A stretch of DNA of 64,000 nt from Magallana gigas. Its lineage: Eukaryota. Shown here piece after piece: positions 13,401-60,033 of the stretch (within the stretch, counting starts at the first letter, position 1; every line of letters starts with the position of its first letter). The position numbers and the translations under genes were made by a program. Location: contig NC_088859.1 in NCBI RefSeq assembly GCF_963853765.1, positions 51,522,001 through 51,586,000 of the forward strand, written 5' to 3'. Under the pieces are notes generated by a model, which worked only from the letters and a program-made list of their open reading frames with translations, was not told the DNA's origin and searched no databases.

Positions 13401-15421
13401 CCAAACGACCCAGCGCGTGTCTGCTCATTGTAGCAGCATCAAACTTGGTGGAGCCCAAGCAGTGGCTAATTTCTCGGGCTTTGGACGCTGGAAACCGAAT
13501 TTCAACGATACCAGTTTCTGTTTGTATAACGCTTGACTTTGGACTTATGGGAACGATCCCGAGTTCTTCAGCGAGAGGATGTGGCCCCCACCCATGTTCT
13601 GGGACTTCGGGAAATCCTTTAAAGTCTTTGACTGGCACTCCACAGTGGATTAAATATGATAACATGAGATTAAATGGACTGTCTTTAGAATTATCAGTTC
13701 CGTATACGTCCAGCCTGAATCGACCAATGAAAGGAAAGCTTACACCAAATTGTAACGTGGTTTTTGATTTGCTCATCATCACGTATTTGTCAAGGTCACT
13801 GGTATCAGTATTTTCCTCTACGTCTAACTCTGTAACTGAGTACTTGAAATCAAGATTTGATGACTTGTCTCTCGGTAAATCAAAGCTAATCTTACAGGGT
13901 CTTCCATCCGGCCGCAGGATACAGTTGTCGGTGTCGGAAAATCCTTTACTGATGCTGAGACCAAGATGGTGGTAGTGTTCCCGGAAGTACGGTTGCTCCT
14001 GGAATCGTTCCTCTGTGATAGGATTGGCCAAGAGTTGCCATTGCTCCTCGTCCGGAAAATGAGTAAATATGAACTTTTCTGGGTCACACAGGTAAAAGAA
14101 CTCGTTGACCGGGCGGGGTTCTCCCTCCGTGTCCCCCATCTCGGTCGACAGAGTTATCTGCCCGTTTTCATCCACGGTGATTTGGTCCCGGTACTGGGCG
14201 TAGGGGATGGAGGTGTGGGCCCAGAACGGGTCGATCAGGCGCCACTCCCCGTTCACGTATACCGCGTTCCATTTTGACGCTAGTACTTCTTTCCTGATCT
14301 GATCACCCACCTCATAGAAGCCGTGCTTAGAAACGCCATTGATCACGACACACGGAATGTTAGCAGACCTTGTAAAAATAAAAACTCTCATTTACTCTAA
14401 ATTCTACATTAAGATTTGTGAGAATATTTTATAATTAAACAAGTTATGAAATGCTAATTTATCAATCATTTTCTACTCACACACATAAGACATAGAGTAG
14501 ATTGGCATGATCACCGAAGTCCGATTGTATTTTTATTAGGTACTCTAAAGGGCTATTTTCTGGAGGAAGAATTTGGGATATGATGCTCTCTTCGTCAAAT
14601 GACGTCATCCATCTAAATATAGCACGGATTCGAAACAGGTCGTCAATGACTTTAAAGCTTTTGGATACCACCAGGTGATCCGCGATGTCCCAGAAATTCT
14701 CTAATAGAAGCTCTGGTGGTGCCTACAAAACGTATTAAGTGGTTTGTAACGTATTATTGCATTATCATAGAGAATATTGATAGTATGTAGACAAACGGTA
14801 GGTTGAGCGTCAGTGCTGAGTTTTACCTTGAGAGCCGTTTGATCTATAGAAGCAAAGTCCACTCGCTTGAGGAGTTCCTCCTTGGTTATTTTTGGAGGGA
14901 CCACGGGGATATCCGCTCCCTCCCCGAACGTCCCTGAGGCCTGGTCAAGTACGTCATCAGCCTGATAAAACAACATAAACATCAGCAATGTAAACAATGA
15001 ACAAAAGCATTCATCCTTGTATCGAATGCTTATAACTAGCAACTTGGAGCGTGTGAATTTTATCTATCTATTTATTCATATATATATATTAATTTTCATT
15101 TATTTATTTATTTGTTCATTTATGTCTTGGAAGTCATGGATCATGTTTTCAGCCGCTGTTTCAAATATTAAGAAAACGTTTTGAATATTGTAAAAAAAAA
15201 AAGAAAGAAAGAATATCAATCTGATCTTCAGTGTCTTTCAAATTTCAAAACACCGTTTAAAGGAATTTCAGTACATGAGACATATTTTATTATACTTAGG
15301 ACATGGCAATGACTTTTAATATGCTATACGTATTCACAATCTTCGAATAATTTAAAGAAAAAGGCTAAAACTGTTGTTTACGTACCGCGAACACCCTGGG
15401 TCCCTGAGCCTGGTTCCCCAT
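10464..15421 (-). CDS. KY/hillarin-like transglutaminase-like protein with C-terminal dynein-MTBD-like domain, paralog B (~1247 aa)
   Basis: Exons 15386-15421 (MGNQAQGPRVFA), 14827-14961, 14481-14722, 11814-14368, 11514-11681, 11111-11376, 10809-10994, 10464-10619. GT-AG, total 3744 nt, ending in TAG. Motifs: RAIFRWMT, DFGDHANLLYVLC, SKWNAVYVNGEWRLIDPFWA, EIKQYANPPEGVHECIMATLVLLG, DVSKGAAAFYMW. Confidence 0.9.
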
Positions 15422-16965
15422 AGTCTCACTTCAATATAAACAGACTCTTAGGTGTTCCTCTCAGCATCTATCCCACAATGCAGTGCTATCCGCGGGTTTC
15501 CAAGACTGCCGGAGACAATTCTGACGTGACCTATGGGTCCGCTTTATCCCTCTTAATCGTCCTACAGTTAGTTATTGTCCCTATACTGGACAGCAGAGGG
15601 GAGCGAAATGTTTTTGTTGAAGATTACTTTTTTACTTATCCCTCTACATACTTGGAGCTAACGTCCGACACAATGATAAGACGAAGGGCTGAATTTAAAT
15701 AGCTCTCAATTCAAATTAAATTTGTGTTTTTATTTCTACTTTGCGCTTAGCCTTATTATTTGCAAGTGGATGTTTGCTTAAATATTTATGAAGTTAAAGC
15801 AGAGAAATAAGAAAAATGTGTCAAGAGAATATTGTACTATATTTACACCCATTAAGTGTTGTTCTCCACTATTTCTTAAGAATTAAAAAGTGACATGAGT
15901 GCATGAATTCTACACAATCTAGTTTTAACCAGTTTGAAATATACACTTTCAATTGCATTGTTTTACTATTTAAATGTCAATTTTGTTTCAAATACCTATC
16001 ATGGGTTATTATAACATCATTCATTAACAATTCTTTCTTTGTTATTGAATACAATCTGTGAATGTAACATAAATGTATTTTTTTAATTATGTTTATTGTT
16101 TCATATCTGAATAATAATGGATATAGAAATGGTGTAAGTTCAAGTTCATTTATTTCACTTGAATCATAAATTATGTTGCACGAGGTACAGAGAAAATAAT
16201 TACAAAAGGATATAAAATGTAAGGTGCTGTGGTAAAGCAATGTACTATTTGTAAAGTAAAGCAGGATTAAAAAATACAAAATGTACATTCCTAAGTGTTA
16301 AGGTAGGAGAACCGACCAGCTAAAAAAAATTGCTTATTAGTTTACATATATTTTGTATATATACATGTATGGTACATGTATTACTGATATAATTTATAGT
16401 TAATATTTTGATGTAGGTGAAATGAGACTATCTCAGTATGTCTTATAGTCATATTGTAAATTTACAAAGGGTCTCCAAATAAGCACATTTTTGTACAAAT
16501 CAGAAAAACCAATAGTAGGTACAAAACAACATAAGTGAAAATCATATAATTTTTTAATAAAATTAATGCAAAATATCGATACAATTGTAACTGTACTTCA
16601 TACAAGCGACTTATTATTCTGTAATAGCAATGATTATTTTTTTTCTGTGGAGATGATATACAGTATATCATTTACGACGAAGAATTAAAGATGGGCAGGC
16701 TTAAACTGTTTGATTAATTTTGTTCAATACAGTTTGGTTAAGCTACATGAGTACACTTGATCACAATTTCTCAAACAAATTAAGATATTCATCTTTATCA
16801 TCGATTGAGGTTTCCTGGGTACATTAAATCGTAATACGGTTCGAATACGTTATAATACCCCCCCCCCCCCCCCCTCGCCCGCAAAAACAATTAATCCTCG
16901 CACCCCACCCCGGAAAAATCCAGATCCGCGCTTTCATGACGTCATCTCTCAGTGTAAGTATTCTT

Positions 16966-19900
16966 CTAGCGTTTGCCGCTGGGAGGCGCCATACTGGAGG
17001 ATCTAGGCCCGATGTTCCGCGCGGACGTTTTCCCGCTCTTCCGCAGTGAGTTTCTGTAAGACTCCGCTTGTTGAACCATATTGTTAGCCTAAAATATTTC
17101 AAAAGACTTGTGTGTCATACTTGTAACCACTGTTTGAAAGAAAGATAACTCTGAATATTTAAATGACATTGTGGTAAAAAAGCCCATTGAAGATTAATAA
17201 AACGTTCATCTTTGCATGAACTCAAAGATCATTGCTTATACATGTGTAATTGTCTAACGCATTTTTATGTACATAATACTACAGTACGTTACGTTTTTGC
17301 GAATGAAATTATTTCACGAATGTCCTGGGTACATTATTTCACGACTGTGAATTTAAAATATAACAATGTCATATTAGAGATGAAATATGACACGTCATAG
17401 TTCATTTAAACAATAACGCGGGTTATGTAAAAATAATTTCTGCAATGATCGCTACCTTCATAACCCGCATGACTCATCAAAAAAAGCATTTTATTGTTTA
17501 TATTAACATCTGTCTTTTAGCTAATTAATAAATTATTTATGAAACGTAATTAAAATTCACTAAATTACTGTTTATGTACATACACGTTAGCTAAAAGAAA
17601 CAGCGAAATCGTCTCCTGAGAGACTCTGAGCCTGACATCATCATGATTATTTCGTGCAGTCAGTGATATTTCGTAGGTCGCTGTAGGTTTTTATCAATCG
17701 ATAAACGGGGCGTGTCAATTTCAGACCTGACAATTTCTTCTCAGTTTCAGCGCTGACCAATTGATAAACGGGGCGTGTAGATTTCAGTCTGGCTGTTTCA
17801 TAATAAGCTATGAATTAACTATACGTTTTCGTAAGAAATAGAGGGAATAATATTTGGTAGATGTAAATATAACCTAAAAGAAACAGCCAGGATGACAGGA
17901 CAGATATCGACACGCCCTGTTTATCGATTGGTCTAAACTTACAGCGACCTACGAAATATCACGGACTGCACGAAATAATCATGATGGTGTCACACTCAAA
18001 GTCTCATAGGAGACGATTTGGCTTTTTTTTAGCTAACGTACATACGTACATTAAGTGTATTTTAGTGGATTTTACTTACTTTTCATAATCAGAATGTCAA
18101 TTAGAGAGATGTTAATATAAACAATAAAATGCTTTCTTTGATGATTCATTCGGGTTATGAAGGTAGCGATCATTGCAGTCAGAAACTTTTTTAGACAAAT
18201 TTGGACAACCTGCAAACGCGGGTTATGTTTTTTTTCTGCAATGTCGCTACGTTCATATCCCAAATGAACCACCAAAGAAAGCATTTTATTGTTTAAATAA
18301 AACAACAAGAATGAAAATCATAACAATGTATCACCACTTACCCAAGTAAAAAATGCTGCCGCTCCCTTGCTGACATCACGAATTTGCAGATACCTAAAAG
18401 GACTCAAGATTTTCTGCGCAGCTGCAACAATGGTAGGATTGGTGTCTTTGGGATCAAATGCCGCAACACGTCGTAGAATGTTCTGTTTTCCAGTTTTAAA
18501 CAACAAAGCATGACATTTTTTCCAATCCTGTTTAAACATAAATAATCAAAATTATTTGAACGTGCTCGTCAATACAATATCGACAGTTAATTATTCTAGA
18601 GAACTGAATTGGATATTGGGTAATGAATCGGTCACCTTGACAACTGTAGCCCCCTCCCCCAGGAGTAGGAAGGTTGCTCCCAGGGTCTGGTGTACCCCGT
18701 TGGGAGGCTGGGTGTACTTCTTCATCTCTGTGACGGCGTTCTGGTTCATGTCGATGACCGTGGTCTCTATCTTCTTCATCCGGATGTACCTCTCCAGCAG
18801 ACGGTTAGCCAGCAGGATCTGTACCGTCAGCGCCATGTTGTAGTTATACTTGTGGGCACGGTTGATCGCCTCCCGTAGGATATCCGGGTCTTTTGATAAC
18901 GTGGCATTTATCAAATCTGGATAGTTTATCAGTAAGGGTTTTATGAATTGTCATAAAAAACTAATATTTTCATTAAAAAAAAATCACGCAATACTCTTTA
19001 TATATGATAAGAGAAGCTCTTAAAAAACATACACGTAAAATAGAGCCAGATATATCTAGCCTCATTAATGTTTAAGCTTACTGTCTTTGGCTTTCAGCTG
19101 GTTAATGATCCGCCGAGCTTCCTTTAGTAGTTCATCACTCTTTGGAGGCTGTGTTGCTTTGTATTCTCCAAATATGCGCACCAGTTCCTTCAATTTTCTG
19201 TTTCGTATCGCTCTGTTTAACTTACGGACAATCGTACGTCGACGTGCTGTAATCAATTGAAAATATGGTTACATGTATGACTGTTTTGAAGAATCCGAAT
19301 TTACATCATTTATTTGTTTCTATAGGCATAATATAAAATCATAACTGACCAGCACGGTATTTATCTTTGGTATCTTTGTCCATGTTCTTTTCGTCAATGT
19401 CGGGCTTAACTTCGGCCTCAGATTCCATGGTAAGGCGCTCGTCTTCATCATCGCTGTAATCGTCGTCGTTATCATTGTCCACCTGGTCCTCGGCGATGAC
19501 ATGCGCTGCCACTTTCCCGAACGCGGACACGCTTACGCTGTCGTTCCGCGTGGAGTCCTCTCTGTCGCTTTCCTGGACCGTGAAGATGCTCTCTGAGTCT
19601 ACGTCCCCGAGGCTTCTCCCGTCTGAGGAACTAAAGACATCGTCACTTTCCTTCTCTTGGTTGTCGTCTGATTTGGTTGAAATTGAGTCCCTATTCTGCG
19701 TGCCTTCTTTAACAACTACACTGGTAACAGTACCTGCGGCAATTTGGTTTTCAGCTGGAATGCTATCGGCTGAATGACGACCTTCATTTTCCTCTTGTGT
19801 ACTTTTTGGGCGATCATTGCGATTTTCGTCAGTGCTGACATTCTTATATTTTGAACTTTCTTCTTTAAGCTTAGTTGTGGTATGGATAAAAACTACAGTA

Positions 19901-22900
19901 TTAATTTCTGACTCTTCTCGTTTTTCATTGTCGTTTGTATTTATTTTGTCCTCTTCAGCATCACTGCTTGATTCTTTATCATCTTTCTGAGTATGAGAAG
20001 GTGTCTCAACTTCACTATCACCTCTCTTCCTGATTTCACTTTGGCGATCACTTTCTTCGTCGTCTCCTAACACTTTGCTTTGATCTACATCATCGTTTTG
20101 TTGCTGCTCTTCATCATTCTCGTCTATCGCTTCCTCTGCTTGTTGCTGCTCCTCAATATTCTCCTCTATCTCTTCCTCTATTTCTGCTTGAGGTTTCAGA
20201 GATTCTATCAAGGCGTCGATATCATCAGTATAGGAGTCGATAGAAGGCCGGCGGCAGATAGCAAACCTCGCTACAGTGTCCAACACGTTTGATTTATCCT
20301 GAGCCCACACATCCATCACGTACTCACCATCCTCTTTTAAGGTGATGTCGAACGTGTCGGAGTTGACCGCCACGGAGGGTCGCGTACCGTTTTCTCCGTC
20401 TCTGCCGTCGCGGCGACTTATACGTGTGAAGACTTTTTCTGTCACGTCTACACGCGGGATTGGGATTGTGATGGTTTCCTCTGATGTCCTAATAGTTGCT
20501 GTAATAATGTCGTCCTCCTCCTTTGTATCCTCTGCAAACTTCACGCGCTTAACATCACTGACAATGGAAGTTATCATGTAACTTTGAATCTCATAGACAT
20601 TGTTACTGTCCTCGTCTATGGCCGCTAGGACATTCATAGAGTAGTCGCCCGGAACGGGAAGTGTTAAGTCAAATACCCAATGGTTGTCCACATGGGTGCT
20701 CTCTATCTTACCTCTTGCTTGGGCGTCTTTGTTACTTGAAGACAAGTCACACATTAGGACCAATCCCTCGGAGTGTGTTTCAAACTCAACTCGTGCTTTC
20801 CCGCCCCAAGCTTTGACCATTCCGTTTTGATAACTTATGACGTCAATACCAAACTTTTCTGCGTAGGGCTTTGTTCCTACGTTGCCACCAGCAACATTAG
20901 GGAAAGGTTCGTTTATCTTTTCGCCTCCATCGAAATAGAGGAGTAAGTTTATGATGTCCTTTGGAATATAATTCTCTATTTTGTTTCCCCCGTCGTCGGC
21001 GAATATTTTCAATGCATATTCTCCTTCTTTTGGTAATCGAACTTTCACTATATACTTCTCTTTATCTCTTCGCGACAAAATGTACTTGCTTAATAATGCT
21101 TCATTGATTAGCACATTTTTCAAAGAACTAGACAGAAAAGGAATATCTTGTACCTCGAATATAAATTCAATTTCTCCGGTTTTCGTGGTGATTCGTCCAC
21201 AAAGGTTTTCTTTATTTCTTAAACGTATCCCAGCATCCTCTGCGTGAGGTGTTACACCCCACCCTAGGTCGGGGCAATCAGGAAAAGGCAGAATAGAGTC
21301 GCTTTTCCCATCGCACTGAATCAAGTAGGTACAAAGAAGTTTGTAGGATTTGGAATGTTGCACATCAACCGAAAAAATATCAAACTGGAACATTCCAGTG
21401 ACCGGTAGTCTGATTATGAATTTGACTTGTTCCTCTGTGTGCTCAAAGAAAACAAAGCGTTCGAGAAGTAAATCTACAGGCTTTTCCTCGCCATTTATCA
21501 CTTCCATTTTCATCTGACTAAGGTTGTAGGCGAACTTGTAGAATCTTCCTTCTGACATTGGTAACGTAAACACAATATTGACCGGATCCCCATCTGTGTA
21601 GAGAATACAGTTTTTACAGTTATTTCCAATCTCCATGTCCAGTATGTGGAGCTGTTCTCTAACATAAGCCCTCTCTTGAAATTCCTTCTCTGTAATCGTA
21701 GACTTCACCAGCTGCCATGCAGGCTCGTCCGGAAGATGGGTCCACAACAACTGTTCCGGATCGACCAGGAAATAGAAGTCATTGAATGGCACGGGGCCCT
21801 CGCCGTCCTCCATCACTCGCTTTAGACGGTTCTTCTTTGTGAGTTCCACTCTGTCTATTGAGTTCCTCTCATCAACACACACGGATGCCCAGAAACAGTC
21901 CACAATTCTCCACTCTCCTTCCACATACACGGCGTTCCACTGAGAGGCCATACTCGTTCTATCCACTTCTCCACCAAGCTCGTACATGGCGCTCTTCGTC
22001 ATCCCGTTGATGATAACACATGGTATGTCCGCTAGTCTATAACAGAAAGGGGAAAATTAATTATCTAACATTCGTTTGATTAATGCATAACAACACTAAT
22101 AAAATACCAAACGCGTTCTGTAAATTATTAATTAATGTTACATCAAATAAAGTTAACTGTTTCGTGTTTAGGTATAAAAATCACATGTGCTTGTTTCATA
22201 TAGCTAGTACGCTCAATCAGCAAATACAATAACATTCTTAATGTTTGTAGTAAATTAATTAAAATGGACATGGGCATCTTAATTTGCTAAATAGTTCTGT
22301 ATTAACTTAGCAGAATGGGAGAGAAATATGGAAGAGGAATACTCAACGCACGAGCACATGGTGTAGAAGAGGTGGGCGTGGTCGCCGATCTCGCACTGAA
22401 TCTTCAGGAAGTATTCCAGCGGGGATCCGTCGGGCGGTAGTACGTCGGTGTCGATGTTCATTATGTCATACGACACTATCCAGCGGAAGATGGCGCGAAC
22501 TTTGAACAGATCATTGACGACCTGTCCGTCCGGCGTCACAATCATGTACTCCACTACATCCCAGAAATCCTCCACCAGAAGGTCGGCGGGAACCTAGGGT
22601 GTGTACAGACACAGATAATCTACATGTAGGTATCATAAGCAGTGGAGATCACATACACAGGTAATGAAGGTATCATAAGCAGTGTGGACCAAACACACAG
22701 GTAATGTAGGTATCATAAGCAGTGGTGACCACATACACAGGTAATATAGGTATCATAAGCAGCGTGGACCACACACAGATGATGTAGGTATCATAAGCAG
22801 TGTTAACCACTGTGACAGACACAGATAATATAGAAATAATAAGCTGTGTTCCAGCAATAGACATGCAATGCATATTTTTGCAAGCAGTAAACAGACAATA

Positions 22901-23352
22901 TATACAGGTTTGTAAGATTTAAAACATTATTGTTTATGGTTCAAATATTTGTTAATTTTTTAACAACTAGCGGCATTTCTCTCAATAACCCACCTGCAGC
23001 GCAATATCATCGATAAACTTTAGGTCGACGTCCTTAAGGAGTTCTTTTTTTGAAGTAAGAGGCGGATGTGGACTGGGCTTCCCTTTCTTACCCACAGTTC
23101 CACGGTGGATTGGCGCGGCTTTCTTTGAATTCTGTGTTTAAAATAATTAGATTTATTTTAGCAAATTTCAAAAGTGTTTATAATTGTTACAGAAATAGCA
23201 AAATATCAAATAGTCCATGTGTTGTTAACGTAAAACAATATATATCCAGCTACTCATGAACAAAATGTAAATGAACCCTTAACAGTAATTCTTACCTTAT
23301 CCTGACTTGCTGATGTGTCAACAGATGGCGCTTTAGATGCCCCTGACCCCAT
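16966..23352 (-). CDS. KY/hillarin-like transglutaminase-like protein with C-terminal dynein-MTBD-like domain, paralog C (~1292 aa)
   Basis: Exons 23296-23352 (MGSGASKAPSVDTSASQDK), 22994-23131, 22352-22593, 19350-22036, 19082-19246, 18636-18916, 18342-18527, 16966-17088. GT-AG, total 3879 nt, ending in TAG. Motifs: RAIFRWIV, EIGDHAHLFYTMC, SQWNAVYVEGEWRIVDCFWA, EMKKYTQPPNGVHQTLGATFLLLGE, DWKK, DVSKGAAAFFTW. Confidence 0.9.
17405..18300. mobile_element. ~900-bp non-autonomous element with ~300-bp inverted arms and a terminal hairpin, in the last intron of paralog C
   Basis: 17410-17720 is the reverse complement of ~17900-18185. 18120-18300 folds back on itself (aaacaataaaatgctttctttg...caaagaaagcattttattgttt). 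Confidence 0.8.
22612..22830. repeat. Intronic minisatellite, ~39-40-bp unit x5
   Basis: Core aggtatcataagcag recurs at ~22628, 22668, 22708, 22748 and 22786 with related intervening sequence, in the gene C intron 22594-22993. Confidence 0.9.
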
Positions 23353-26726: not shown

Positions 26727-29700
26727 TCAAGAGTTGCGGGACTTGACGGTGTAAGTTCTGTTGATGGTATCCTGGGTGTTGTATCTAGGGAGTTTGTCCG
26801 GTAGCTGGGGTAAATGTGACCTACTGGTCCGGGCCGACGCCGGACCCCGTGAGATTGTTTGTTCTACATTTCGGACATCTTCGGTCACTTTCATCCACTC
26901 GTCCATTGGACGACTAGCGCCCCCTGTCTGTTCTACTTCGTGTATCATTCCCGACGCCTTGGTAAAAAAGTAAAAAACCAATAAAAAACTTAAATATAAA
27001 ACCGAAAAAACAGTAACACTAGAAAAATGCACTTGTATCGTCTCTTCGTTCACTATTCAGGGCATTGTTGCGCCCGATTTTCTTTTTAAAACATTCAATT
27101 AATGCATCTATAAAAGATCTTTAAAATTTGCAGACTGAATTACCCAGTTGTAAAAAGCTGCCGCGCCATTGCTAACATCCCGAATTTCCTCCAGCGTGAA
27201 AGGAGAAATGATTCTCTTGGCCTCTAGAGCCACATCCAGGAAGCAATACTTAGGGTCAAACATGGAAACCTTCCGCATAATAGACTCTTTTCCTGATCTT
27301 GAGAGAATCGTCTGACATGTCTTCCAATCCTAAATTTCAGATTCATGATAAAGTCAATGCTACTTGTATGATGAAAAAGTGCATCCAATCATCGACAAAA
27401 GAGAATACATGAGATTGTGTACAAATACCTTAACGTCCTTTCTAGGATATTCTAACAGAACCAAGACGGCCATGATTGATTGACGAACGCCCTCTGGCGG
27501 ATGTGTGTAGGTTCTCAGCTCGGCTGCAGTTGATTGGTCCATGACGAGGATATTGTGACGTAACTTTTCTATCCTGGCAAGTTTGTCACGCAGGCGCTCA
27601 GCTGTCACGATCTGAAGGTTAAGAATTCCGTCATAATTTGCCTCTTTAGCCTCACGAATGGCACGTTTCAGTTTTTCAAGATGGCGAGTTCGGGAAGCGG
27701 CTGCAAGTTCTAAGAATAGAAAATTAAAACATAGCAAATGATGTCGTACAGTAGTGTAGAGCAAATTAAAGAAAATAAAGATATTGTTTATCATTAAAAG
27801 AGTCCTTACGGTCTTTAGCGTTGAGAAGGTGCAACAGTTTCCTGGCGGATGTCAGCGTCGGGTCATTCTCGGCCGGCTTTGTTTCTTCGTAAGCAATGAC
27901 AAGCTGCTCTAATGCATCTCGATCCCCCAGTTCCATGGCGCGGCGTTTCAACATCAAAATGTGACGTCGTTTTCTCACCATGTCTAAAGTAGCTCCAGTT
28001 TTCTTTCTGTCCATTGTTTCCGATTTTGTTTCTGATTTGTCTTCATCCTCCTCTACCTCTTCCTTGATTCGGTCCATTATCACCATTGGGTCGTCTTGCA
28101 TGAGCTCTGTTGTTGTTTTACGGTTGAGTTGGTAACGGGCTATACAATTTAAGAGTCCGAACTCGTCCTTGTCGTAAAGGTTCATCATGTACTCGCCGTA
28201 ATCGTTGAGCTCCGCCAGGAACAGCTTGTCGCTGTCGTGATCGATGATCTCAATCTGAGAACTGTCCGGGGGATCGTTTGCGTGGAGACGCTGAAGACAG
28301 CAGACGACATCCAGGTAACCACGTGGTATGGGAACCAAAGCCTCGTTATCGGCTGTTTGAATGGTCTCTGTTAAAACTCTGGTCGGTTTAAACTCTTCCT
28401 TGGTGTCTCTATAAGCGTGTCCGTCTGAGAAAACGAGATATGAATGGACATTGTACACTCGACTGCGTTTTGGATTTTCCCGCGCAAAAACGTTTATGGA
28501 GTATTCTCCCTTGACAGGTAAGTCTATGTCAAACGCCCATCTATCTTCGATGGTCTGACGGTAGGACTTCAGGTACTTCATCGCCTCGGGGTCTGTCGTA
28601 TGAATCTCAACCATTAGTTCTACATAACTCATTGCTGCAAATTCCAGACGAATTCGACCATCTTTCGTTTTAAACCGACCCTTTTGGATTCTTGCATTGA
28701 CTCCAATGTTTTCAGCTATGGCCTTTTTCCCAAGCATGCCATCGGGGACGTTGGGGAAAGGTTTATTCTGAATATCATCATTTGAGCAGCTAATGAGGTA
28801 GTTTAATATATTATCCGCATCACCTGGGAGTCCTTCTTCATTAGCGTATATCTTCAGAGCATACTCCCCACCTTGTGGAAGTCTGATGTGGATGAAATGT
28901 TCTCCATTTTCCTCCCGTACAAGAATATATTTACTGAGTGTGGCTTCATCTAAAGTGATACTCTTTAGAAGCTGATGTATCTCCATTTTTTTGTTGGTTC
29001 CTAGTTTAATGTCAATTTTGCCGTCTTCAGTCACAATTACGGCACTATTATGGCTTATTGGCACTACCCCCGAATCCTTCGTCTCCTGAACTGGCCCCCA
29101 ACCAATGGCCGGCTGGTCAGGCAAGGGGAGGCAATCCTTCTTTGGGACCGTGCAGTGAATCATATGAGAACATATCAGATCGAATGATTCGTGTATCTTT
29201 TCATCCTTTCCATAAACATCTAATTTAAATTTACCTGACAATGGGAATCTCATTGACAGCCTCAACAGACCGTTTGTTTGTTCAAGCAGAACAAACCGAT
29301 CCAATCTTAGATGATGTCGGAACTCTTCGTCCGATTTATTTCTGTACATTGCGTACCGGAACTGTAGGTCTTCCGTCTTTTCCTCTGGAAACCCAAACCG
29401 TAACTCGAGTTCCCCTTCTTCCGGTATAATAATCTCTTTGAACTGGAACTCGTCAAACAAGTTGATGTTCATGGAGTAAAAGCGTTCCCGGAGATAGACG
29501 TGCTCCTCAAACTCCGTGACCGAGATCGTGCTCTCCAGACACTGCCACTCATCCTCGTCAGGGTAGTGGGTCCAGATGAACTTTTGAGGGTCCGTCAGGA
29601 AATAGAACTCATTGACCTCGTTTTCGACATGCTGGTAGGCACCATCATCATCTTCATCTTCATCAACGTAGTTTCCGTCAGCGTCCACTAATTTCCACTC

Positions 29701-31485
29701 CTTGGACTTCTTTCCAACGACGCATGCTGACGCCCAGAATGCGTCAATAAAGCGCCACTCTCCCTTTAGAAAGACGGCGTTCCACTGAGCTCCCATGTTC
29801 TCCCGGTTCACTTTGCCTCCGACTTCATAGGCGGCGCTTTTAGTCATTCCATTAATAATAACACAAGGGACGCCTAGCATGCTGTAATAAACGAATATAA
29901 AGGAAATGGGAAACTTTATGACATAGATATTGATGTTAATTTTTAAAATTCAAAAGTAAACTGCCATATATTTACAATGCCAAAGCGTAAGTGCATTTAC
30001 ATGTTATTCAAATCTAAAACTTGCAGCAGGTTACTGGATATGAAATCATCCTGAAAATCGGCTGACCCATAAACTTAAAAGTACAGTTTAGTTTTTAAAT
30101 AGTCGATATCACATGTTATGAATGTAAAAATAAAGACGATTCGTCAATTAATATTACTTCATAGTTTTACCACCAACAAACGATGCTCACTTGCAGAGAC
30201 CCCATATTAGGTGCGCGTATCCACCCTGGCTGGTCTGCATTTTGATGAAAAACTCGAGGGGGGAATTTGGGGGTGGCTCATCAGCGGCCTTCAAGTTATA
30301 GATATCTTGATGCACGACCCACAGAAAAATGGCGCGAGTCAGTGCCATATCGTTCCAGTAGTCACGGAATTTAAAAAAGTTGATGACGTCATCAAAGGTT
30401 CCAACCAGCAGCTTGGATGGTGCCTGTGTGATAAAAACGGCATAAATAGTAAAATATCGTGATTGATTATTTTTTTATATGAATTGAATTAAAAGGTAGC
30501 ATATAATGAAATTTTAATTAAAATTCCTTGATAGGCTTCCATATCAAGGAACATGAAAGTAACATATAACAAAATTATTGCAGGGTTCCTGAACCAGTCA
30601 ACCAAGTGAATCAATTTGAACCAAGTTTAAAACTCTAATGAGCGGTCCAAATTAAAGGGCTGAATGACCATTAAAATTTTTAAACTATATTGATCTTTGG
30701 AGCACATCTCTGTATAATAATACATGTACAGGAAATCATCAAATTTCTTTGCTAAAATTTATGAGTTTTTAAGTACTAAATAATAGAAAACTGTTGATAT
30801 TTTTTAAAATCATATTTGAAATTTATAATAGGATTTGTTGATCACCAAGCTTCCTCAAGTCTTAATCACTGTTAAACCGATGTTAAGAATCTGATGAAAC
30901 AATAGAGGTTACCTGTAGAATGTAACTATCGATGTCCTTGTACATCGGCATCTTGAAGAACTCGTCTTTGGTCGTGATGAGGCTGCTGGGTCGGGGCAAG
31001 TCCTGCTTCTGCTCGGGGATCTCCCCATTGAGCGTCGGGATGTGTTGCTTTAAAAACAAAACACATAAAAGGATACAATGTACATATAAAACCCAACCAG
31101 TGCTCTATATTGTGACGTACTTTCTTTGAACTTTGCCATCCATAAACTTATTACTTTGTATATTCTCTTTTCACCATTCTGTTGTCTAACAGGTTTAACC
31201 GTCACTGAAGTTCGCCACAACTAGGACAAACATTTTTCCCTTTTTCAGAGTTTTTTGAAAAGTACATTTGGTCAAATACTTAAGAATTTGAAAATTTAAA
31301 ATCTGTGATTGCATTTTGATTATAATATTTCATTCATACTGATGGATTAAAAACAACAAAAAGATTGAGAGGCTCGGGGTTATTTGACGGACAAAGAGCG
31401 TGTTATATAGCCCTGTATGATGGCTGGCGGTTACCTTGTCAAACTCGCTGATGGCGTGCAGATTCTTACTCTGGTTTATCCCCAT
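26727..31485 (-). CDS. KY/hillarin-like transglutaminase-like protein with C-terminal dynein-MTBD-like domain, paralog D (~1062 aa)
   Basis: Exons 31435-31485 (MGINQSKNLHAISEFDK), 30913-31047, 30191-30423, 27810-29881, 27429-27709, 27144-27329, 26727-26957. GT-AG, total 3189 nt. Motifs: RAIFLWVV, SQGGYAHLIWGLC, AQWNAVFLKGEWRFIDAFWA, ELRTYTHPPEGVRQSIMAVLVLL, DWKT, DVSNGAAAFYNW. Confidence 0.9.
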
Positions 31486-32385: not shown

Positions 32386-33423
32386 TCATACGGTCGACGT
32401 CACCGTCACTTGTCGTCTGCGCAAAATGGCTGATCGTCTGCAGGAAAGAATCTGCTTAAGTTCCACCGAAAACAGGTCGTCCATGAACGCATAAACGATT
32501 GGATTGGCAATGTTATTGACAACAAAAAACATGTCGACAAATCGGAGTCCAAGCAGCATTCCAGAAGACTGCGTGTCCCAGAACCGGTCGGAGGTAGTTT
32601 CAAACAAAAACAAGATCGTCTTTGGCACAAATCAAACGAAAAAGATGGCGGTTATCAACATAAACATCAGCGTCACTTTATAAACTTTTAATCGGTGTTC
32701 TTTTAATTTACTGCTACTTGCTGTTGTGTTTTTAGTTGATTTTGTGTAGCGGAAATAAATCTGTTTACCCACTTTCACATAGAGAACTAGTAACAGACAA
32801 ACAATTACTGCACCCATCGACGTCAAGATGGCGCTGTAAATAAGAGAAAATGTCTTCCAGTCGGCAGAAGTTAGTCTACGACAGGCATTTCCTGTGATGT
32901 TTACTTTCTCTATTTCAACCAAATCTAACCCGTAAGTAAAATAAGACGGAACAGAGACGATGAGAGATCAAAGGAAAGTCAGGAAAACTAAGAGACGTTT
33001 CCAAGGAAGCGACATCTGGCGGCCGAGAGGTTTACAGATCTTCAGGTAGCGCTGGACGGCAATCACCGGTAACAGTAATACAGACATGACAGTTGTCAGA
33101 TACCCAAGGAACCAGCTGTATTTACACAACGTCTTGTCATTGTAATTCACAGGGAATAGATTGAAGGACAAGTTAAATCCAGCGGAGAAACTGACGGAGA
33201 AGGCGTCCACCAGTGCTAGGTATGGGACAAAATATCGACCCTCGCCCTCCCCGCCCAGTCGGACAGTGTACACAAACACGACAATAGCGTTACCAAGGAC
33301 TCCAATGAAGATACAGAGCGCCAAGAAGACGGTGTTTGGGAGGAGGACCCTAGAGATCTCCTTGCTTATCTCTGCGAGGCGTACCTCCGCTGAAAGATTA
33401 CCGGAAGTGTCCACGATGTCCAT
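32386..33423 (-). pseudogene. Class A GPCR pseudogene (near-identical paralog of 38402-39439) with two in-frame TGA codons
   Basis: Same 1038-nt length and frame as the intact copy. TGA at 32968-32970 replaces GGA (Gly, TM4) and TGA at 32632-32634 replaces TGT (Cys, TM6). No frameshift. The ORF track splits it into 32968-33423, 32632-32922 and 32386-32628. Confidence 0.85.
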
Positions 33424-38401: not shown

Positions 38402-39439
38402 TCATACAGTTGACGTCACCGTCACCTGTCGTCTGCGCAAAATGGCTGATCGTCTGCAAGAAAGCATCTGCTTAAGTTCCGCCGAAAACAGGTCGTCCAT
38501 GAACGCATAAACGATTGGATTGGCAATGTTATTGACAACAAAAAACATATCGACAAATCGGAGTCCTAGCAGCATTCCAGAAGACTGCGTGTCCCAGAAC
38601 CGGTCGGAGGTAGTCTCAAACAAAAACAAGATCATCTTTGGCACAAAACAACAGAAAAAGATGGCGGTTATCAACATAAACATCAGCGTCACTTTATAAA
38701 CTTTCAGTCGGTGTTCTTTTAATTTACTGCTCCTAGTCGTTGTGATTTTAGTTGATTTTGTGTAGCGGAAATAAATCTGTTTACCCACTTTCACATAGAG
38801 AACAAGTAACAGACAAACAATTACTGCAATCATCGACGTCAAGATGGCGCTGTGAATAAGAGAAAACGTTTTCCAGTCGGCAGAGGTTAGTCTACGACAG
38901 GCATTTCCTGTGATGTTTACTTTCTCTATTTCAACCAAATCTAATCCGTAAGTAAAATAAGACGGAACAGAGACGATGACAGATCCAAGGAAAGCAAGTA
39001 CAACTAAGAGACGTTTCCATGGAAGCGACATCTGGCGGCCGAGAGGTTTACAGATCTTCAGGTAGCGCTGGACGGCAATCACCGGTAACAGTAATACAGA
39101 CATGACAGTTGTCAGATACCCAAGGAACCAGCCACATTTACACAACGTCTCGTCATTGTAATTCACAGGGAATAGATTGAAGGACAAGTTAAATCCAGCG
39201 GAGAAACTGACAGAGAAGGCGTCCACCAGTGCTAGGTACGGGACAAAATATCGACCCTCACCCTCCCCGCCCAGTCGGACAGTGTACACAAACACGACAA
39301 TAGCGTTACCAAGGACTCCAATGAAGATACAGAGCGCCAAGAAGACGGTGTTTGGGAGGAGGACCCTAGAGATCTCCTTGCTTATCTCCGCGAGGCGTAC
39401 CTCCTCTGAAAGATTACCGGAAGTGTCCACGATGTCCAT
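38402..39439 (-). CDS. Rhodopsin-like (class A) GPCR, single coding exon, 345 aa
   Basis: Seven hydrophobic segments. TM1 GVLGN, TM2 LALVD, TM3 LCK...IAVQRYLKIC (QRY at the DRY position), ECL2 Cys (NACRR), TM6 CFVP, TM7 NPIVY. N-terminal sequon NLS. Confidence 0.93.
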   Translation of the reverse strand: MDIVDTSGNLSEEVRLAEISKEISRVLLPNTVFLALCIFIGVLGNAIVVFVYTVRLGGEGEGRYFVPYLALVDAFSVSFSAGFNLSFNLFPVNYNDETLCKCGWFLGYLTTVMSVLLLPVIAVQRYLKICKPLGRQMSLPWKRLLVVLAFLGSVIVSVPSYFTYGLDLVEIEKVNITGNACRRLTSADWKTFSLIHSAILTSMIAVIVCLLLVLYVKVGKQIYFRYTKSTKITTTRSSKLKEHRLKVYKVTLMFMLITAIFFCCFVPKMILFLFETTSDRFWDTQSSGMLLGLRFVDMFFVVNNIANPIVYAFMDDLFSAELKQMLSCRRSAILRRRQVTVTSTV

Positions 39440-47296: not shown

Positions 47297-48319
47297 TTAT
47301 AGCGAGTAGTCTAAGTCACAGAATATTTTCTTCAGCTGCTGTGAGAACTTGACGTCCAGAAAAGCATATACGAACGGGTTTGCGATGTTATTGATAACGA
47401 AGAGAACGTCGAGGAATCGAACCAGGAGCCTGTCACTGTAAGACAGAGAGTCCCAGAACCTACTGTCTACACACTCCAGGATGAAGATGACGACCTTGGG
47501 CGAGAAGCTGACGATGAAGATCAAAGAGATCAGCATAAACATGGCTGTAATTTTGAACATTGTTTGCTTGTTTCTGTCGGCTGAGCTTGTGCCATTGGTA
47601 CCATCGTTCAAGTTTGTCATCTTCACGTTATTGTCGTTGGTTCTTTGACGTTTCCACTGCTGCATCTGAGAGTGAATTTTTCGCCCGATTAATGTGTATA
47701 AAATGATTAATGCCCAGACTACGCCAGCGACGATGACATTGCAAACAATAGCGTGAATAAGAGACAACCATCGATTCTCTAGAGTCAGTCGTCGGCAGGC
47801 ACTTCCGGTGACGTTATACCGAGCGCTGTACGCAGGGTCCAGCCCATACGTTACTGGAATAGGTGCCGAAATCAGAGCCGCCGCAATAAACGTGCCGAGC
47901 ACCGCCACTCTTTTCCACCCTAGCGTCATCTGCTTACCAAACGGTCGACAGATCTTCAGGTACCGCTGTATGGCGATGACCAGCAGCAGGAATATCGACA
48001 TTACTGACGCCATGTAACCAAAGAACCAGCTCCATTTACAGAGTTGCTGGCCCTTGAACCTGATGGGGCTGACGTTGTACGAGATGTTGAAGCCCGCGGT
48101 TTCACAGAGAGCCAGGAGATCGACCACGGCAAGGATCGGGATGAAGTAACGCTCCTTCGCTCCACGCAGTTTGAGACCATAGATGAGGATGACGAGGCTG
48201 TTTCCGATGATTCCATTAACGATACATATACCCAGAAATACGGAGCTCGGAATCAAGGTCTGGGACAGTTCCGCGTTCCAAGAGTTGATCCGGGAATCCT
48301 CTTCCGAGATGTTTGCCAT
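47297..48319 (-). CDS. Rhodopsin-like (class A) GPCR, single coding exon, ~340 aa
   Basis: Motifs GIIGN, LAVVD, IAIQRYLKIC, SACRR, SFSP, NPFVY. Start placed at ATG 48317-48319 (MANISEE, with sequon). The ORF-track start at 48361 is a TTG upstream of acceptor-like AG sites. Confidence 0.92.
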   Translation of the reverse strand: MANISEEDSRINSWNAELSQTLIPSSVFLGICIVNGIIGNSLVILIYGLKLRGAKERYFIPILAVVDLLALCETAGFNISYNVSPIRFKGQQLCKWSWFFGYMASVMSIFLLLVIAIQRYLKICRPFGKQMTLGWKRVAVLGTFIAAALISAPIPVTYGLDPAYSARYNVTGSACRRLTLENRWLSLIHAIVCNVIVAGVVWALIILYTLIGRKIHSQMQQWKRQRTNDNNVKMTNLNDGTNGTSSADRNKQTMFKITAMFMLISLIFIVSFSPKVVIFILECVDSRFWDSLSYSDRLLVRFLDVLFVINNIANPFVYAFLDVKFSQQLKKIFCDLDYSL

Positions 48320-49282
48320 AATTAGTCGGTCTGTTCTGATCAATAGGTAGGAGACGGTCAAGTTATATTATCAATATACATGTACCTCTGCGTGTGAATT
48401 ATCACTTATAAAAGTAAAGTGATTTTAACTTCCTTCCTTCAAAGATGGGCGGGATGATAGATTAATTATTTTACTAAATTATGTGGGATATAAAGTACCA
48501 CAAGGCTCACGTATTGATAATCTTATGGTAGACCTTTTTATTTTGAAATAAGAAGTATTTGTAATCTATTCATTCGGTTTTTAACAGATTTCCATAGTAC
48601 TGATTTGTCGCACTGTATAAAGGTAAAAAGTGATTTCAAAACATTTTCTGTAATTCTTTAAGAGCAAGGAAGAAAATGTTATAACAACTATGGTGGTTTT
48701 GATTGACAAGTATTCTTCTTACAATATTTCTCTGCTAGATTGGGCCCACACGTATAATGCACTTAGTAGTTTTACTACAGGCTTATTCTACTTGACACAT
48801 ATATAATTCCTCTATACACTTCACTTTGACATTAGGATCATTGAAATTTTTCTACGTATATACACGCGTGTAGCGTGTCAGACTACACGTTTTAATGCTG
48901 ACCGTTGTTAAGATACAATACCTTTCCTAAAAGAGTGATAACGCACACTTGGACAGATATCTTTTGACCTTAAAAACCAATTTAATATAATTTTAATTGA
49001 AAGGCCATGTCAAGGCATAGCTCAAAATATTACATCTAAAAGTTTGAGATAGATATGATGTGTAATTCACTGACTTTTCAGCCTCCTTAAATGTTCTGTT
49101 CTGATTTCAACAATGAGATAAATATATCGTCTAATAATTTGTGAAAATCGGAGTCATTATTTCGAAAGCAATTTCGTATGTGTAAATGGTGTATGAAAGG
49201 TTGATGAACCTTTGATAAAGATAATTTGGTTAACTTCTAAATAAGAATTTGTTTTCATGCAATCAATATCTATCATGAACAA

Positions 49283-50881: not shown

Positions 50882-52864
50882 TTAAACTGATACTATGTGA
50901 ACCCACGGACTATTAGGTGTAAACAAACTCGTTCCAAATTCAGTAATTGCCAGTTGTCTGGATCTGACACAAATAGCATAGGGCATCTTTATGCCATCTC
51001 GAGCAGACAGAAACTTTTCGTCAATCATGTGACCTTCGTCTGATATCGCCTGGACGTCATTGTTGTCCAAGCAGACATAAATTGTTCCCATCTTATCCGA
51101 GGCCACACCCCACGGGGCGGCGTTTGGAGTGTGTGTCCATTGTACCTGACCCTCGGGACTCATGCAGATCACCCGCCGAAGTTCATTGTCACTGACCACA
51201 ATCATACCGTCCCGTGTGACCGTCAAGAATCGCGGATCACGTAAAATACGCGACCGCTCCACGGAGATCTGAACGCGACCCACCCTGTTAATGATGTCAA
51301 TGCACTTAGATCCACGGTAACTACACGTCACGAAGTTCGTTCTCTGATGTAAGCAGATTATGTCATATGCCTTATTGGTCTTGAACGTCTCTTTTATCGC
51401 CAACTCCGAGTCTGTGCTGATGATAACTACCTGCTTTTTCTCGGGTTGAGTAACGGCCACTTCCGTAGGATTGTCCATTAGAGTGATGCTGGTGGCGCCC
51501 TCTAACGGCAGTGTTTCATGAGTTGTGAACGTTCCTGCTATGCTACACTTTCTTAATAGATTGTTATACGAGTCGAGGACCAGAACATAGTACCCTATAA
51601 ACACTATCCCGTTCAAATGCCACGTCGTAGTGTCTTCCTGTGGGTTTTTGACGCTGATCACAGACTTACTCTTACTACGACTCTGTGCGTGGTTATTCTG
51701 GGTTATCCTTCTTGGCCTACTTACAGTAGAGGTAGACACTCGCCGGTTTCCGGGAGCGGCGAACCTCGGAGCTGCCGAGGAGAGAGGCGCAGAAATAAAT
51801 CCTAGATTCCCGTCAGTGTCGGGCTGTGTTCTTGGTGTGATGTCTTCCGTTCGGTTTGGGAGTTTAACCCTCAGGGTGGCTAGAGACGGCGGGTTGCTCA
51901 AGAACCGGGAGAATGTCGGATGATCTGACATTTCAATATGTCTTGGGTTTCTCTGTGATATGGCCGCCAGTGCTCGGTCATATTCTTCTGCCTGGGACTC
52001 GATCCTTCGGTATGAATTCAGGATATCCTGGGTAGAATTTGTGCTCAAGAGGTTATCAAATGTCAGTTTGGTGTCCTGTATTCTATCAAAGAGAGCAACC
52101 AACTGCCGTGTTTCTGAAGGCAACTCATGTCCCGCTAGAGTTATTTTCTGTTTTAATTCTTCAGCATTTTGGAAACAGACCTGAAGGAATCGGTTAATAT
52201 TTGACTCTATTTCATCCAGACTCTCCATAGCCCGCGATTTTGACTGCTGTAAGCTGTTATGCTCCGGGGAACCATACTGCACTAGCTGTTGAACACGAAA
52301 AATTAAGTTTTGAAACCTCACATGTAAAGAATTGGCTTTCGGTTGAAGTCGCGACACAGCTTCCTCGTATGCTACACAGTCACATCGACGTGTTCGATGG
52401 TTATCGATCGCACACTGAGCACACAGAACAGTGTTACACCCAAAACAGTAGTACTCCATTAACCGTCCGGTATGTACGTTACAATGCTGGAAGTTCGGGT
52501 TAGAATTCGACACAAGAGGATGTAGCCCTTGGTTAGTTTGAGCATTGCTACCCGGCTGGCCTCCGCGTTCTTGTTCATTGACAATGGAAAGAAGGTTAAG
52601 GGCGAACTGGTCCACGGGGAACGACGACGCCCACTCCCGGGTGTGGATGCTGGACCCCGGCCCACTGACCAACCCCCGGTCTATCGGACATTTGAAGTTC
52701 CGAGCGTTAGGACTGAGGACGGTCTGTTGGATGTAGTCGGACAGACACTGCTGACAGAAGGTATGTCCGCAGGGGAGGAGTCGGGGGGAGGAGTACCGCC
52801 CCAGACATATGCTACAGATTAGGTAGTCGTTCTCTATATTCTCCACCACTCGCTGCTGGGCCAT
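50882..52864 (-). CDS. TRIM-like E3 ligase: RING + B-box2 + coiled coil + C-terminal NHL-like beta-propeller, single coding exon, ~660 aa
   Basis: RING CSIC...LPCGHTFCQQC...CPID; B-box CNVH...YYCFGCNTVLCAQCAIDNH; helical middle region; propeller repeats (PRFLTVTRDGMIVVSD, PWGVASDKMGTIYVC, PYAICV). ATG at 52862-52864 lies directly after a polypyrimidine-AG acceptor (52866-52867), so the MFCSR extension in the ORF track is intronic. Confidence 0.92.
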   Translation of the reverse strand: MAQQRVVENIENDYLICSICLGRYSSPRLLPCGHTFCQQCLSDYIQQTVLSPNARNFKCPIDRGLVSGPGSSIHTREWASSFPVDQFALNLLSIVNEQERGGQPGSNAQTNQGLHPLVSNSNPNFQHCNVHTGRLMEYYCFGCNTVLCAQCAIDNHRTRRCDCVAYEEAVSRLQPKANSLHVRFQNLIFRVQQLVQYGSPEHNSLQQSKSRAMESLDEIESNINRFLQVCFQNAEELKQKITLAGHELPSETRQLVALFDRIQDTKLTFDNLLSTNSTQDILNSYRRIESQAEEYDRALAAISQRNPRHIEMSDHPTFSRFLSNPPSLATLRVKLPNRTEDITPRTQPDTDGNLGFISAPLSSAAPRFAAPGNRRVSTSTVSRPRRITQNNHAQSRSKSKSVISVKNPQEDTTTWHLNGIVFIGYYVLVLDSYNNLLRKCSIAGTFTTHETLPLEGATSITLMDNPTEVAVTQPEKKQVVIISTDSELAIKETFKTNKAYDIICLHQRTNFVTCSYRGSKCIDIINRVGRVQISVERSRILRDPRFLTVTRDGMIVVSDNELRRVICMSPEGQVQWTHTPNAAPWGVASDKMGTIYVCLDNNDVQAISDEGHMIDEKFLSARDGIKMPYAICVRSRQLAITEFGTSLFTPNSPWVHIVSV

Positions 52865-53938
52865 CCTAGAACAAAACAAGCGCTTGTATTATATAATCAG
52901 AGTTTTTCCGATTTTTATGTTTACCATGCATTGATAAGCAATCAAAATTTTGAAAATAGCGTTCAATGCCCGTCGAATCCCCCGCACTTAGGATATTTAA
53001 ACGAAATATGTAAATCTCATCAAAAGGAATCTTACATTTAATTTGATAGTGTACATGTACATCAGTATACGTGTAATATAGAAATGCATTATCTGACCAT
53101 TAAGAACATTTATTTATACTTTATACGTTTCTTATTTTCATTTCTGTGTTAATTTTTTTAACATTACAACATTATTTCAAACAATCTTTGACTGTGCTAG
53201 TGCATGCTATTTTGTTTATTTAACGTTATTTGGAATGGACAAGAACATTATGTATTTTTTGTCACCGTCTAACGGATTTTAAATGTTTTCCAAAATAATT
53301 CTAGATCTTTGACAAAAAAATTGAAAAATAATGTTTCACCTAAAAGGAAGCAAATGCGCAGGATTTAAACAGAGAAAATTCCTCTAAAATTCGAACACCC
53401 TCTCAGACAAGCGGTGCTGTACACAATCCTCCGCTTATCACACTTAGCTAATTTGACACATATTAATTACTGTGAACTTTTATAGTTTGACAATTATAAA
53501 TGAATTTTTGTGAAACCGCGATTTTTGACCCATTATTGGTCTAGACTATACTTTAATAAATCAATAATAAAAAGAAATGAAAAATTATCCTGATAATAAA
53601 AGTACTTTAAGGATGGAGTCTAGACCCATTTGAACCAAAACATTGCAAATTAGCACAGTAAATGGTCTACATCTGGGCACACAACGTCGTGTGGCTTAAT
53701 TTGGAAACCTATATCTCTTCATTCTCTTGTGTTTATAGAAGGAAAATATGCTATTGACATGTATCTTGAAATTTATAGCATAAACAAAGTATACAATCAA
53801 GCCAAGAATACATTTTTTTTACTAATATTCAAACAAGTTCTTTATTTTTTGTTTTGCTCAAAGTGGGGGTTATATAACGCTTTGTACTCCCCTGTCATTT
53901 GGATGTCATTGGTTGGGTTATAAGCGAGATACAGAACT

Positions 53939-59022: not shown

Positions 59023-60033
59023 TTAGGTTATTTGAGTGTCATTTGCCTCTGTACAAGAAGTAGAGTCATTTTTATATGATTGCTTAGTATGGCAAGAAAA
59101 CCCTTTTTTAAGCTCCGTCACAAATTTGATGTCCATAAAGGCATAAACAAATGGGTTGGCCAGATGGTTTACAACGTACAATACCTCGAAAAATCTTACA
59201 GCAGCATATTCTTCTACGGTTAGGGTCTCCCACATACCAACAGTTATTCCCTCCAAAAGAAACGTTATCACTCTGGGCGAGAAGCTCACCAAAAATATTA
59301 TTGTGATAATCATAAACATCAACGACACGTTCGTCCTCTTCTTGCTGGGATCTGTCCTGTTTTGTTTATTTTGTCGGTGGATGACCTTTGCAATTAACGT
59401 ATACAGTACGATAAGTACAATTCCCCCAGTTACAACAAAAAATGTGCAGGATGTGCTATGAATCAGGGACAGAGTCTGCGTAGTGGAGGTCAGTCTACGA
59501 CAAGCAGTTCCGGTTACGTTCAGTTCTTTGTTGTAAACTCTCTCCAGTCCAAATGTGAAGTATGTTGGAACAACGAGAATACTTGTAAGAATAAAGGACA
59601 GAATCAGAGAAAAGCGCCTCCAAAACAAAGTCATTTGCCCTCCAAACGGTTTGCAAACTTTCAGGTAGCGCTGTACAGCAATTATCAGTAGCATTTCAGA
59701 AGCAAAAACAGTGGCAAAAAATCCGCATACAAAATTCCACCTACAAAGTGATTCCATCGTGTAGGTAACAGGAAAGAAATTGTTGACCGTATGAAGCTCT
59801 ACTGAAATAACCACAGCAAGGAGATCGGCTAGAGCCAAATAGGGTATAAAATAACGTCCTTCATATTTTCTATGAAGTCGGAGTCCATAAATATAAATCA
59901 CTACGGCATTGCCAACAAGTCCCACAACAGCGCACAGAAGCAGAAAAACAGTGGTTGGTATAAATGCCTTGAATCGTACGTCATCCCAAAGTTTGAGACG
60001 TTGCCACTCTGTCCAGTTGAGTTGAGACCCCAT
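59023..60033 (-). CDS. Rhodopsin-like (class A) GPCR, single coding exon, 336 aa
   Basis: Motifs GLVGN, LALAD, IAVQRYLKVC, TACRR, SFSP, NPFVY. Sequons NWT and NVT. Clear paralog of the other three GPCRs. Confidence 0.93.
   Translation of the reverse strand: MGSQLNWTEWQRLKLWDDVRFKAFIPTTVFLLLCAVVGLVGNAVVIYIYGLRLHRKYEGRYFIPYLALADLLAVVISVELHTVNNFFPVTYTMESLCRWNFVCGFFATVFASEMLLIIAVQRYLKVCKPFGGQMTLFWRRFSLILSFILTSILVVPTYFTFGLERVYNKELNVTGTACRRLTSTTQTLSLIHSTSCTFFVVTGGIVLIVLYTLIAKVIHRQNKQNRTDPSKKRTNVSLMFMIITIIFLVSFSPRVITFLLEGITVGMWETLTVEEYAAVRFFEVLYVVNHLANPFVYAFMDIKFVTELKKGFSCHTKQSYKNDSTSCTEANDTQIT

Follow-up and report, generated by a model that had tools for sequence, protein, structure and literature searches.

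Gene C and its C-terminal module

The window analysed here is a stretch of 64,000 nucleotides from the oyster Magallana gigas (G000:C7:51522001-51586000). It carries four paralogous genes, A to D, all on the minus strand and arranged head to tail. The subject of this report is the C-terminal module of gene C and its relatives, which is, with near certainty, homologous to the stalk-tip microtubule-binding domain (MTBD) of dynein heavy chains. On the minus strand, the gene C model begins with MGSGASK at 23352 and ends with the stop at 16966. Its parts are listed below; CC1 and CC2 are the two coiled-coil helices of the dynein stalk and H1 to H6 the helices of the MTBD. Residue numbers of the protein refer to K1R698_MAGGI (P0001), a Magallana gigas protein with the database name 'Kyphoscoliosis peptidase'.

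23296..23352, minus strand: exon 1, starting with MGSGASK.
22991..23134, minus strand: exon 2, a basic and proline-rich linker.
22342..22593, minus strand: exon 3, in which the transglutaminase-like core begins (PF01841 on P0001 residues 92-192).
19350..22056, minus strand: large exon with what remains of the transglutaminase-like core, with three stretches of KY Ig-like sequence and with a long low-complexity region that is acidic (PF23265, E 2e-45; 98% identical to P0001).
19082..19247 (+/-1 base), minus strand: exon 5, an upstream helical repeat, ARRRTIVRKLNRAIRNRKLKEL...QLKAKD, with helices predicted at a local confidence score (pLDDT) of ~90.
18636..18916, minus strand: exon 6, with a helical hairpin, the CC1-like helix, H1 (EMKKYTQPP) and H2 (LLLGE); its joints are present in transcript contigs.
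18342..18527, minus strand: exon 7, H3 to H6 of the MTBD: DWKK ... FDPKD ... IRDVSKGAAAFFTW.
16966..17088, minus strand: exon 8, coding for the short CC2-like helix ANNMVQQAESYRN and for a basic tail rich in Ser and Pro, up to the stop codon.
17050..18908, minus strand: the C-terminal module of 166 amino acids in three exons (P0001 residues 1100-1265), as defined by the conserved alignment, the dynein-only profile matches and the AlphaFold2 model.

The peptides in which a dynein likeness had been noticed in the first-pass annotation of this stretch were found in the translated window at 18636-18916, 18342-18527 and 16966-17088 on the minus strand; the frame of the first module exon opens at 18914, one split codon past the acceptor at 18916. 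Contigs from three independent studies contain the joins 17087|18341, 18526|18635 and 18916|19082, each with GT..AG on the minus strand. The source runs of these contigs are presumed to be RNA, and the contigs are regarded as transcripts because the joins lack introns and fall at canonical sites. The exons of gene C are, therefore, spliced and transcribed as the first-pass annotation had proposed. The contigs also run on into the exon upstream of 18916, linking the module exons to the KY exons, and the 3' untranslated region extends to at least 16894. The last three exons are the C-terminus of the Magallana/Crassostrea gigas 'kyphoscoliosis peptidase'-like protein: the spliced C-terminal 195 amino acids differ from K1R698 at 2 positions (99% identity), the last exon is 100% identical and the minus-strand open reading frame (ORF) 19339-22002 is 98% identical. 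Four elements make up the module: a helical hairpin, the CC1-like helix, the MTBD with its six helices, and the short CC2-like helix.

Within the MTBD coding region lies an intron of 1.25 kb (17089-18341) that contains nested inverted repeats with arms of 138 nt at 86%, 76 nt at 95% and 58 nt at 88% complementarity. The repeats are covered at very high depth by transcript contigs that belong to other loci and are probably MITE-like elements that occur in large numbers, and are transcribed, at other places in the genome. On the minus strand, more than 20 consecutive G (16870-16900) lie ~65-95 bases past the stop codon of gene C, within or at the end of the 3' untranslated region.

Sequence homology to the dynein stalk tip

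Single exons did not match the Pfam family of the dynein stalk, PF12777; the Pfam scan gave only noise at E>0.01. In contrast, the spliced C-terminal regions of orthologues and paralogues from four phyla, among them oysters, pearl oyster, the brachiopod Lingula, the annelid Paralvinella and scallop, matched it in six of seven cases (E 4.4e-5 to 2.2e-3, 17.5-23.1 bits), with no match for the scallop sequence. The matched positions, ~95-217 of 344, are the MTBD portion of the family. The score was just below the gathering score of 24 bits in all six, which speaks against the assignment. Because the signal was consistent but sub-threshold, the search was reversed and the profile of the module family was run against the PDB sequences. 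A profile of 7 sequences gave 51 matches at E<=1 among all PDB chain sequences (best E 4.9e-7), 50 of which are dynein heavy chains and the last a designed binder (E 0.57). With a profile of 27 sequences, 54 matches were found at E<=0.01, every one to the stalk tip of a dynein heavy chain. A Chlamydomonas axonemal heavy chain ranked first (E 3.5e-11), and DNAH6 (E 4e-9), the yeast cytoplasmic MTBD (E 2.5e-8), DNAH2 (E 5e-8) and the mouse MTBD (E 1.3e-7) were also matched; the top two (E 3.5e-11 and 4e-9) are inner-arm axonemal dyneins. Thus, the comparison of the spliced exons with the dynein stalk profile, proposed as a check in the first-pass annotation, fell just short of the Pfam score but was clearly significant in the reverse direction, and the alignment of the C-terminal domain with the dynein MTBD is borne out by matches to dyneins only.

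The alignments are collinear over ~45 residues of CC1 and then H1 to H6. The motifs E-x6-PP-x2-V, LLLG, W and S-x8-W of the module align on TEIRSMVNPPSGV, ILG, W3151 and S3203...W3212 of dynein. The spacing is therefore the same in module and dynein, as had been claimed before, but the earlier counts were off by one (E-x5 and S-x7 had been given instead of E-x6 and S-x8). Among 186 family members, the signature residues P68 (97%), P69 (72%), W93 (96%) and W153 (97%), which align to yeast NPP, W3151 and W3212, are conserved, and the signature of the dynein MTBD is present: the Pro-Pro kink at the CC1/H1 junction, the Trp after H2 and the Trp in H6.

Predicted fold

An AlphaFold2 model of P0001 residues 1100-1265, built from an alignment of 27 sequences, was all-helical with a pLDDT of 87 and a predicted TM score (pTM) of 0.71. 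The six-helix bundle H1 to H6 at the CC1/CC2 junction superposed on solved dynein MTBDs, as expected from the first-pass annotation, with the following structure match scores (for the microtubule-bound structures with the root-mean-square deviation and the number of aligned residues):

3ERR: 14.1.
5AYH: 13.8.
6RZA (DNAH7 MTBD on microtubules): 13.7; 2.4 A over 135.
6RZB (dynein-1 MTBD on microtubules): 13.5; 2.5 A over 134.
6KIO (yeast MTBD on microtubules): 13.0; 2.2 A over 126.
First unrelated fold: 5.5.

The deviation was 2.2-2.5 A to microtubule-bound and 3.2-3.8 A to low-affinity MTBDs, but the aligned lengths differ and an AlphaFold2 model cannot assign a state. Among the AlphaFold models of Swiss-Prot, RSP2, T. 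brucei FAZ1 and human EFCAB5 matched best (TM 0.59-0.66), and no dynein was among the 30 matches listed. Taken together, the module is homologous to the MTBD of dynein heavy chains as firmly as sequence comparison and a predicted structure permit.

An extended model (pLDDT 88.8) contained two further helical hairpins upstream of the module, and module positions 1-48 have a weak repeat upstream. These features suggest that a short helical rod may stand in place of the stalk.

Differences from dynein and other MTBD-like folds

A dynein heavy chain has an AAA+ ring, a linker and a buttress, and the oyster module is without all three. No AAA+ or P-loop domain was found in Pfam scans of the large exons and the full-length homologues, which gave only PF23265 and PF01841; the earlier statement that these proteins lack AAA/P-loop motifs and are not dyneins holds, and they are KY-like proteins. 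The long antiparallel CC1/CC2 stalk of dynein also has no counterpart in the oyster protein. The CC1-like helix has ~36 residues and the CC2-like helix after H6 ~20 residues, and the median distance between the end of the module and the C-terminus is 19 residues. Since CC2 is cut to ~20 residues and the protein then ends, there is no long stalk and no register sliding of the dynein type. Compared with the dynein MTBDs (3ERR, 6RZB, 6RZA, 6KIO), the module has an insertion of 3-4 residues before H3 and a 'tGK' insertion after H3. The module is, therefore, a motor-less MTBD.

MTBD-like folds outside dynein were seen in Chlamydomonas RSP2 (Swiss-Prot model), human EFCAB5, T. brucei FAZ1 and the Toxoplasma ICMT1 chain 9ya2_L; among solved radial-spoke structures, the module matched chain 7jtk_C. 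Profile searches revealed no sequence similarity of RSP2, EFCAB5, FAZ1 or ICMT1 to the oyster module. The fold thus occurs in a few other non-motor proteins, whereas the oyster module is dynein-like in sequence as well.

The KY-like scaffold

In P0001, PF01841 at 92-192 (30.9 bits, cut-off 23) is followed by KY Ig-like domains, an acidic low-complexity stretch of ~250 residues and the helical module. The order of a PF01841 core and PF23265 KY Ig-like domains is that of the KY/hillarin/LTD-1 family, and the homologues of the oyster type are named 'kyphoscoliosis peptidase' or 'hillarin-like' in the database. The C-terminal dynein-like module is extra in the oyster proteins and is absent from the family descriptions and source names that the searches returned. 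The KY/hillarin family is tied to filamin.

MG[SC]xxS is the N-terminal sequence of each of the five full-length homologues, which come from four phyla (MGSGASK in gene C), and M-G-x-x-x-S is the consensus for N-myristoylation. From the motif and this consensus we infer that the KY-like protein would be lipid-anchored at its N-terminus. The position of the catalytic Cys, placed by motif spacing, is occupied by Ile (Met in Lingula) and the Asp is kept; these residues were read by eye and in part against what we take to be the TGM2 motif. Ser takes the place of the His that stands two residues ahead of the conserved Trp, giving SQW where Chlamydomonas FAP246, a weak match (E 0.037), has HCW. By this motif reading, the transglutaminase-like core appears to have lost its catalytic Cys and His.

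The FAP246 match covers P0001 residues 138-196 and 232-270 (exons 22342-22593 and 19350-22056), which belong to the transglutaminase-like core and to the beginning of the KY Ig-like region. FAP246 is a chain of PDB entries 7n6g and 7sqc, presumably structures of the ciliary central apparatus. The match hints at an old tie between KY-like proteins and microtubule organelles.

Spread of the module

About 18 loci with the module were found in the oyster genome, including a tandem cluster of five copies on another chromosome (G000:C6:5798154-5830067). A search of 1.84 billion cluster representatives with the 7-sequence profile gave 1637 proteins at E<=1e-3, 647 at E<=1e-10 and 97 at E<=1e-30. The best 150 matches had 104-1861 amino acids and none was as long as a dynein heavy chain. 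The module is mostly C-terminal, with 116 of 148 full-length copies ending <=40 residues from the C-terminus, and some proteins contain two or three copies per chain (P0049 from Pinctada, P0082 from a metagenome). Sampled members came from bivalves, gastropods, annelids (including leech), a brachiopod, sea cucumber, sea urchin, amphioxus, tunicates, a rotifer and an orthonectid, and the combination of KY domains with the module was found in molluscs, brachiopod, annelids and amphioxus. Besides KY-like scaffolds, the partner regions include TMIE, charged regions named 'trichohyalin-like' and a CARD match that was sub-threshold (22.4 bits, cut-off 23.9). The module is a portable unit. Source names were 'uncharacterized', 'KY-like Ig-like domain-containing' and once, for a scallop protein of 199 amino acids, the automatic 'cytoplasmic dynein 2 heavy chain 1'. 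None of the sampled names mentions a motor-less MTBD module, which would be explained by a score just under the Pfam cut-off.

The tandem array and other genes of the window

The dynein-like pattern had also been noted in genes B and D and in the first half of A, and module exons were indeed located in all three. The exons of the array are listed below; the Pfam scan of large exons covered B and C.

2234-4423, minus strand: large exon of A, aligning to P0001 over the same region as C.
589-867, minus strand: first-half module exon of A; only this half is inside the window.
11791-14391, minus strand: large exon of B (PF23265, E 1e-43).
~11108-11410 and 10803-11006, minus strand: module exons of B, more diverged, with Phe in place of the near-invariant Trp after H2.
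19339-22002, minus strand: large ORF of C (PF23265, E 2e-45).
27766-29880, minus strand: large exon of D, aligning to P0001 over the same region as C.
27429-27710 and 27144-27329, with the last exon at ~26883-26969, minus strand: module exons of D, same domain.

The second half of the module of A crosses the left window edge (G000:C7:51521815-51522009), and a fifth member of the array lies 10 kb beyond that edge (G000:C7:51511456-51512017).

Elsewhere in the window, three intronless genes for rhodopsin-family G-protein-coupled receptors are encoded on the minus strand (38402-39439, 47297-48361 and 59023-60033; PF00001, E 1e-23 to 4e-30). The ORFs 32968-33423 and 32632-32922 resemble a near-identical copy, split over two frames, of the receptor gene at 38402-39439; this copy (32632-33423) is possibly a pseudogene. 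A single-exon ORF of 665 amino acids (50882-52879, minus strand) has the RING, B-box and NHL repeat architecture of a TRIM-like E3 ligase. The tubulin genes of the oyster are split into exons.

Proposed function and alternative explanations

Salt bridges between yeast dynein and tubulin are formed by K3117, E3122 and R3124 in H1, R3152 and R3159 in H3 and R3201 in H6, and mutation of each basic contact residue lowered the affinity more than two-fold (Nishida et al. 2020, PMC7042235). The equivalent positions were tallied over the 186 family members, with yeast numbering taken from the profile alignment, which agrees with every residue named in that study. Three of the six contacts keep their chemistry: the equivalent of E3122 is Glu in 98%, that of R3124 is K/R in 85% and His in 11%, and that of R3152 is K/R in 43% of the members. 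The net charge of the module core is positive in 72% of members (median +3), and gene C has +8 plus a basic tail. The pattern of contact residues and the charge are compatible with microtubule binding, though no proof of it.

On this basis we lean towards static microtubule binding, by which the module would tether a probably membrane-anchored and probably non-catalytic KY-like scaffold to microtubules. The module would bind the microtubule lattice at the intradimer groove of tubulin, as dynein does, and the binding would be static because there is no ATPase to shift the register of a stalk. From the combination of a myristoylation consensus, a transglutaminase-like core that appears non-catalytic, KY Ig-like repeats and an acidic linker, we propose that the whole protein would passively link a membrane or cortical scaffold to microtubules, which may be ciliary. 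Whether the following wider reading is correct we consider evenly balanced: the MTBD would not be exclusive to dynein, and a copy nearest to inner-arm axonemal dyneins would have turned into a module that stands alone, binds microtubules independently of ATP and has a fixed mini-stalk; exon shuffling would have carried it to many proteins of invertebrates. Among the recipients would be scaffolds of the myristoylated pseudo-transglutaminase type, charged coiled-coil proteins and proteins in which a CARD-like or TMIE match was seen.

Several observations weigh against the proposed tether. The other three yeast contacts are not conserved in place and have a basic residue one position away: the equivalent of K3117 is Gln in 60%, with K/R at the next position in 45%; that of R3159 is Gly in 59%, with K/R at the next position in 80% and a conserved G-K/R insertion after it; and that of R3201 is Asp/Glu in 51%, with R/K at the previous position in 63%. 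Furthermore, the lipid anchor and the catalytic loss are read from motifs and consensus sequences, and the radial-spoke proteins with an MTBD-like fold, RSP2 and EFCAB5, are located in spoke stalks, where protein-protein contacts and not contacts with tubulin are described for them.

The last point leads to the strongest alternative, in which the dynein-derived MTBD was re-used as a protein-protein docking domain for septins, filamin-like partners or proteins of axonemal complexes and does not touch tubulin. The radial-spoke proteins that share this fold are placed in the stalks or necks of the spokes, and RGS22, LRRD1 and STKLD1 are given as binding partners of EFCAB5; EFCAB5 appears to be, and RSP2 probably is, a case of docking re-use of a dynein-derived fold. 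The changes at three of the six contact positions and the mostly acidic residue in place of the H6 arginine fit such a role as well. Among the KY/hillarin relatives, hillarin is found at the axon hillock in the leech and a septin is an interaction partner of D-hillarin, as cited in PMC3081291. We regard docking as possible but rather unlikely.

Two further explanations were rejected. That the module is a decaying fragment of a dynein gene, or was fused to a KY-like gene by an error of annotation, has only the unusual domain combination in its favour and is highly improbable: spliced contigs of three studies join module and KY exons, the same architecture is present in molluscs, brachiopod, annelids and amphioxus, the reading frames are intact, and the module is the best-conserved part of the protein (88% of its residues are identical in the Saccostrea orthologue, against 64% in the large exon). 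A chance or convergent likeness of helical bundles or low-complexity coiled coils can hardly account for dynein-only profile matches, collinear alignments and a model that matches MTBD structures.

In the literature consulted, static tethering to microtubules, the function that we favour, is not described for this domain. There the MTBD appears only as a part of the dynein motor, its affinity being set by sliding of the stalk helices. In the literature searched, with most subscription journals outside its scope, no paper was found on a dynein-type MTBD in KY/hillarin proteins or in free-standing form. A natural MTBD that lacks a motor and has a truncated return helix would extend the range of microtubule-associated domains by a new kind, and as a register-locked natural variant it offers a test of models of MTBD affinity. 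If the spread by exon shuffling is true, the ~18 oyster loci encode a new class of microtubule tethers and constitute a natural experiment on MTBD affinity without a motor. The finding would supply a function for hundreds of uninformatively named proteins of molluscs, annelids, brachiopods, echinoderms, amphioxus and tunicates, and it would tie the KY/hillarin family, linked before to filamin, septins and the axon hillock, to microtubules.
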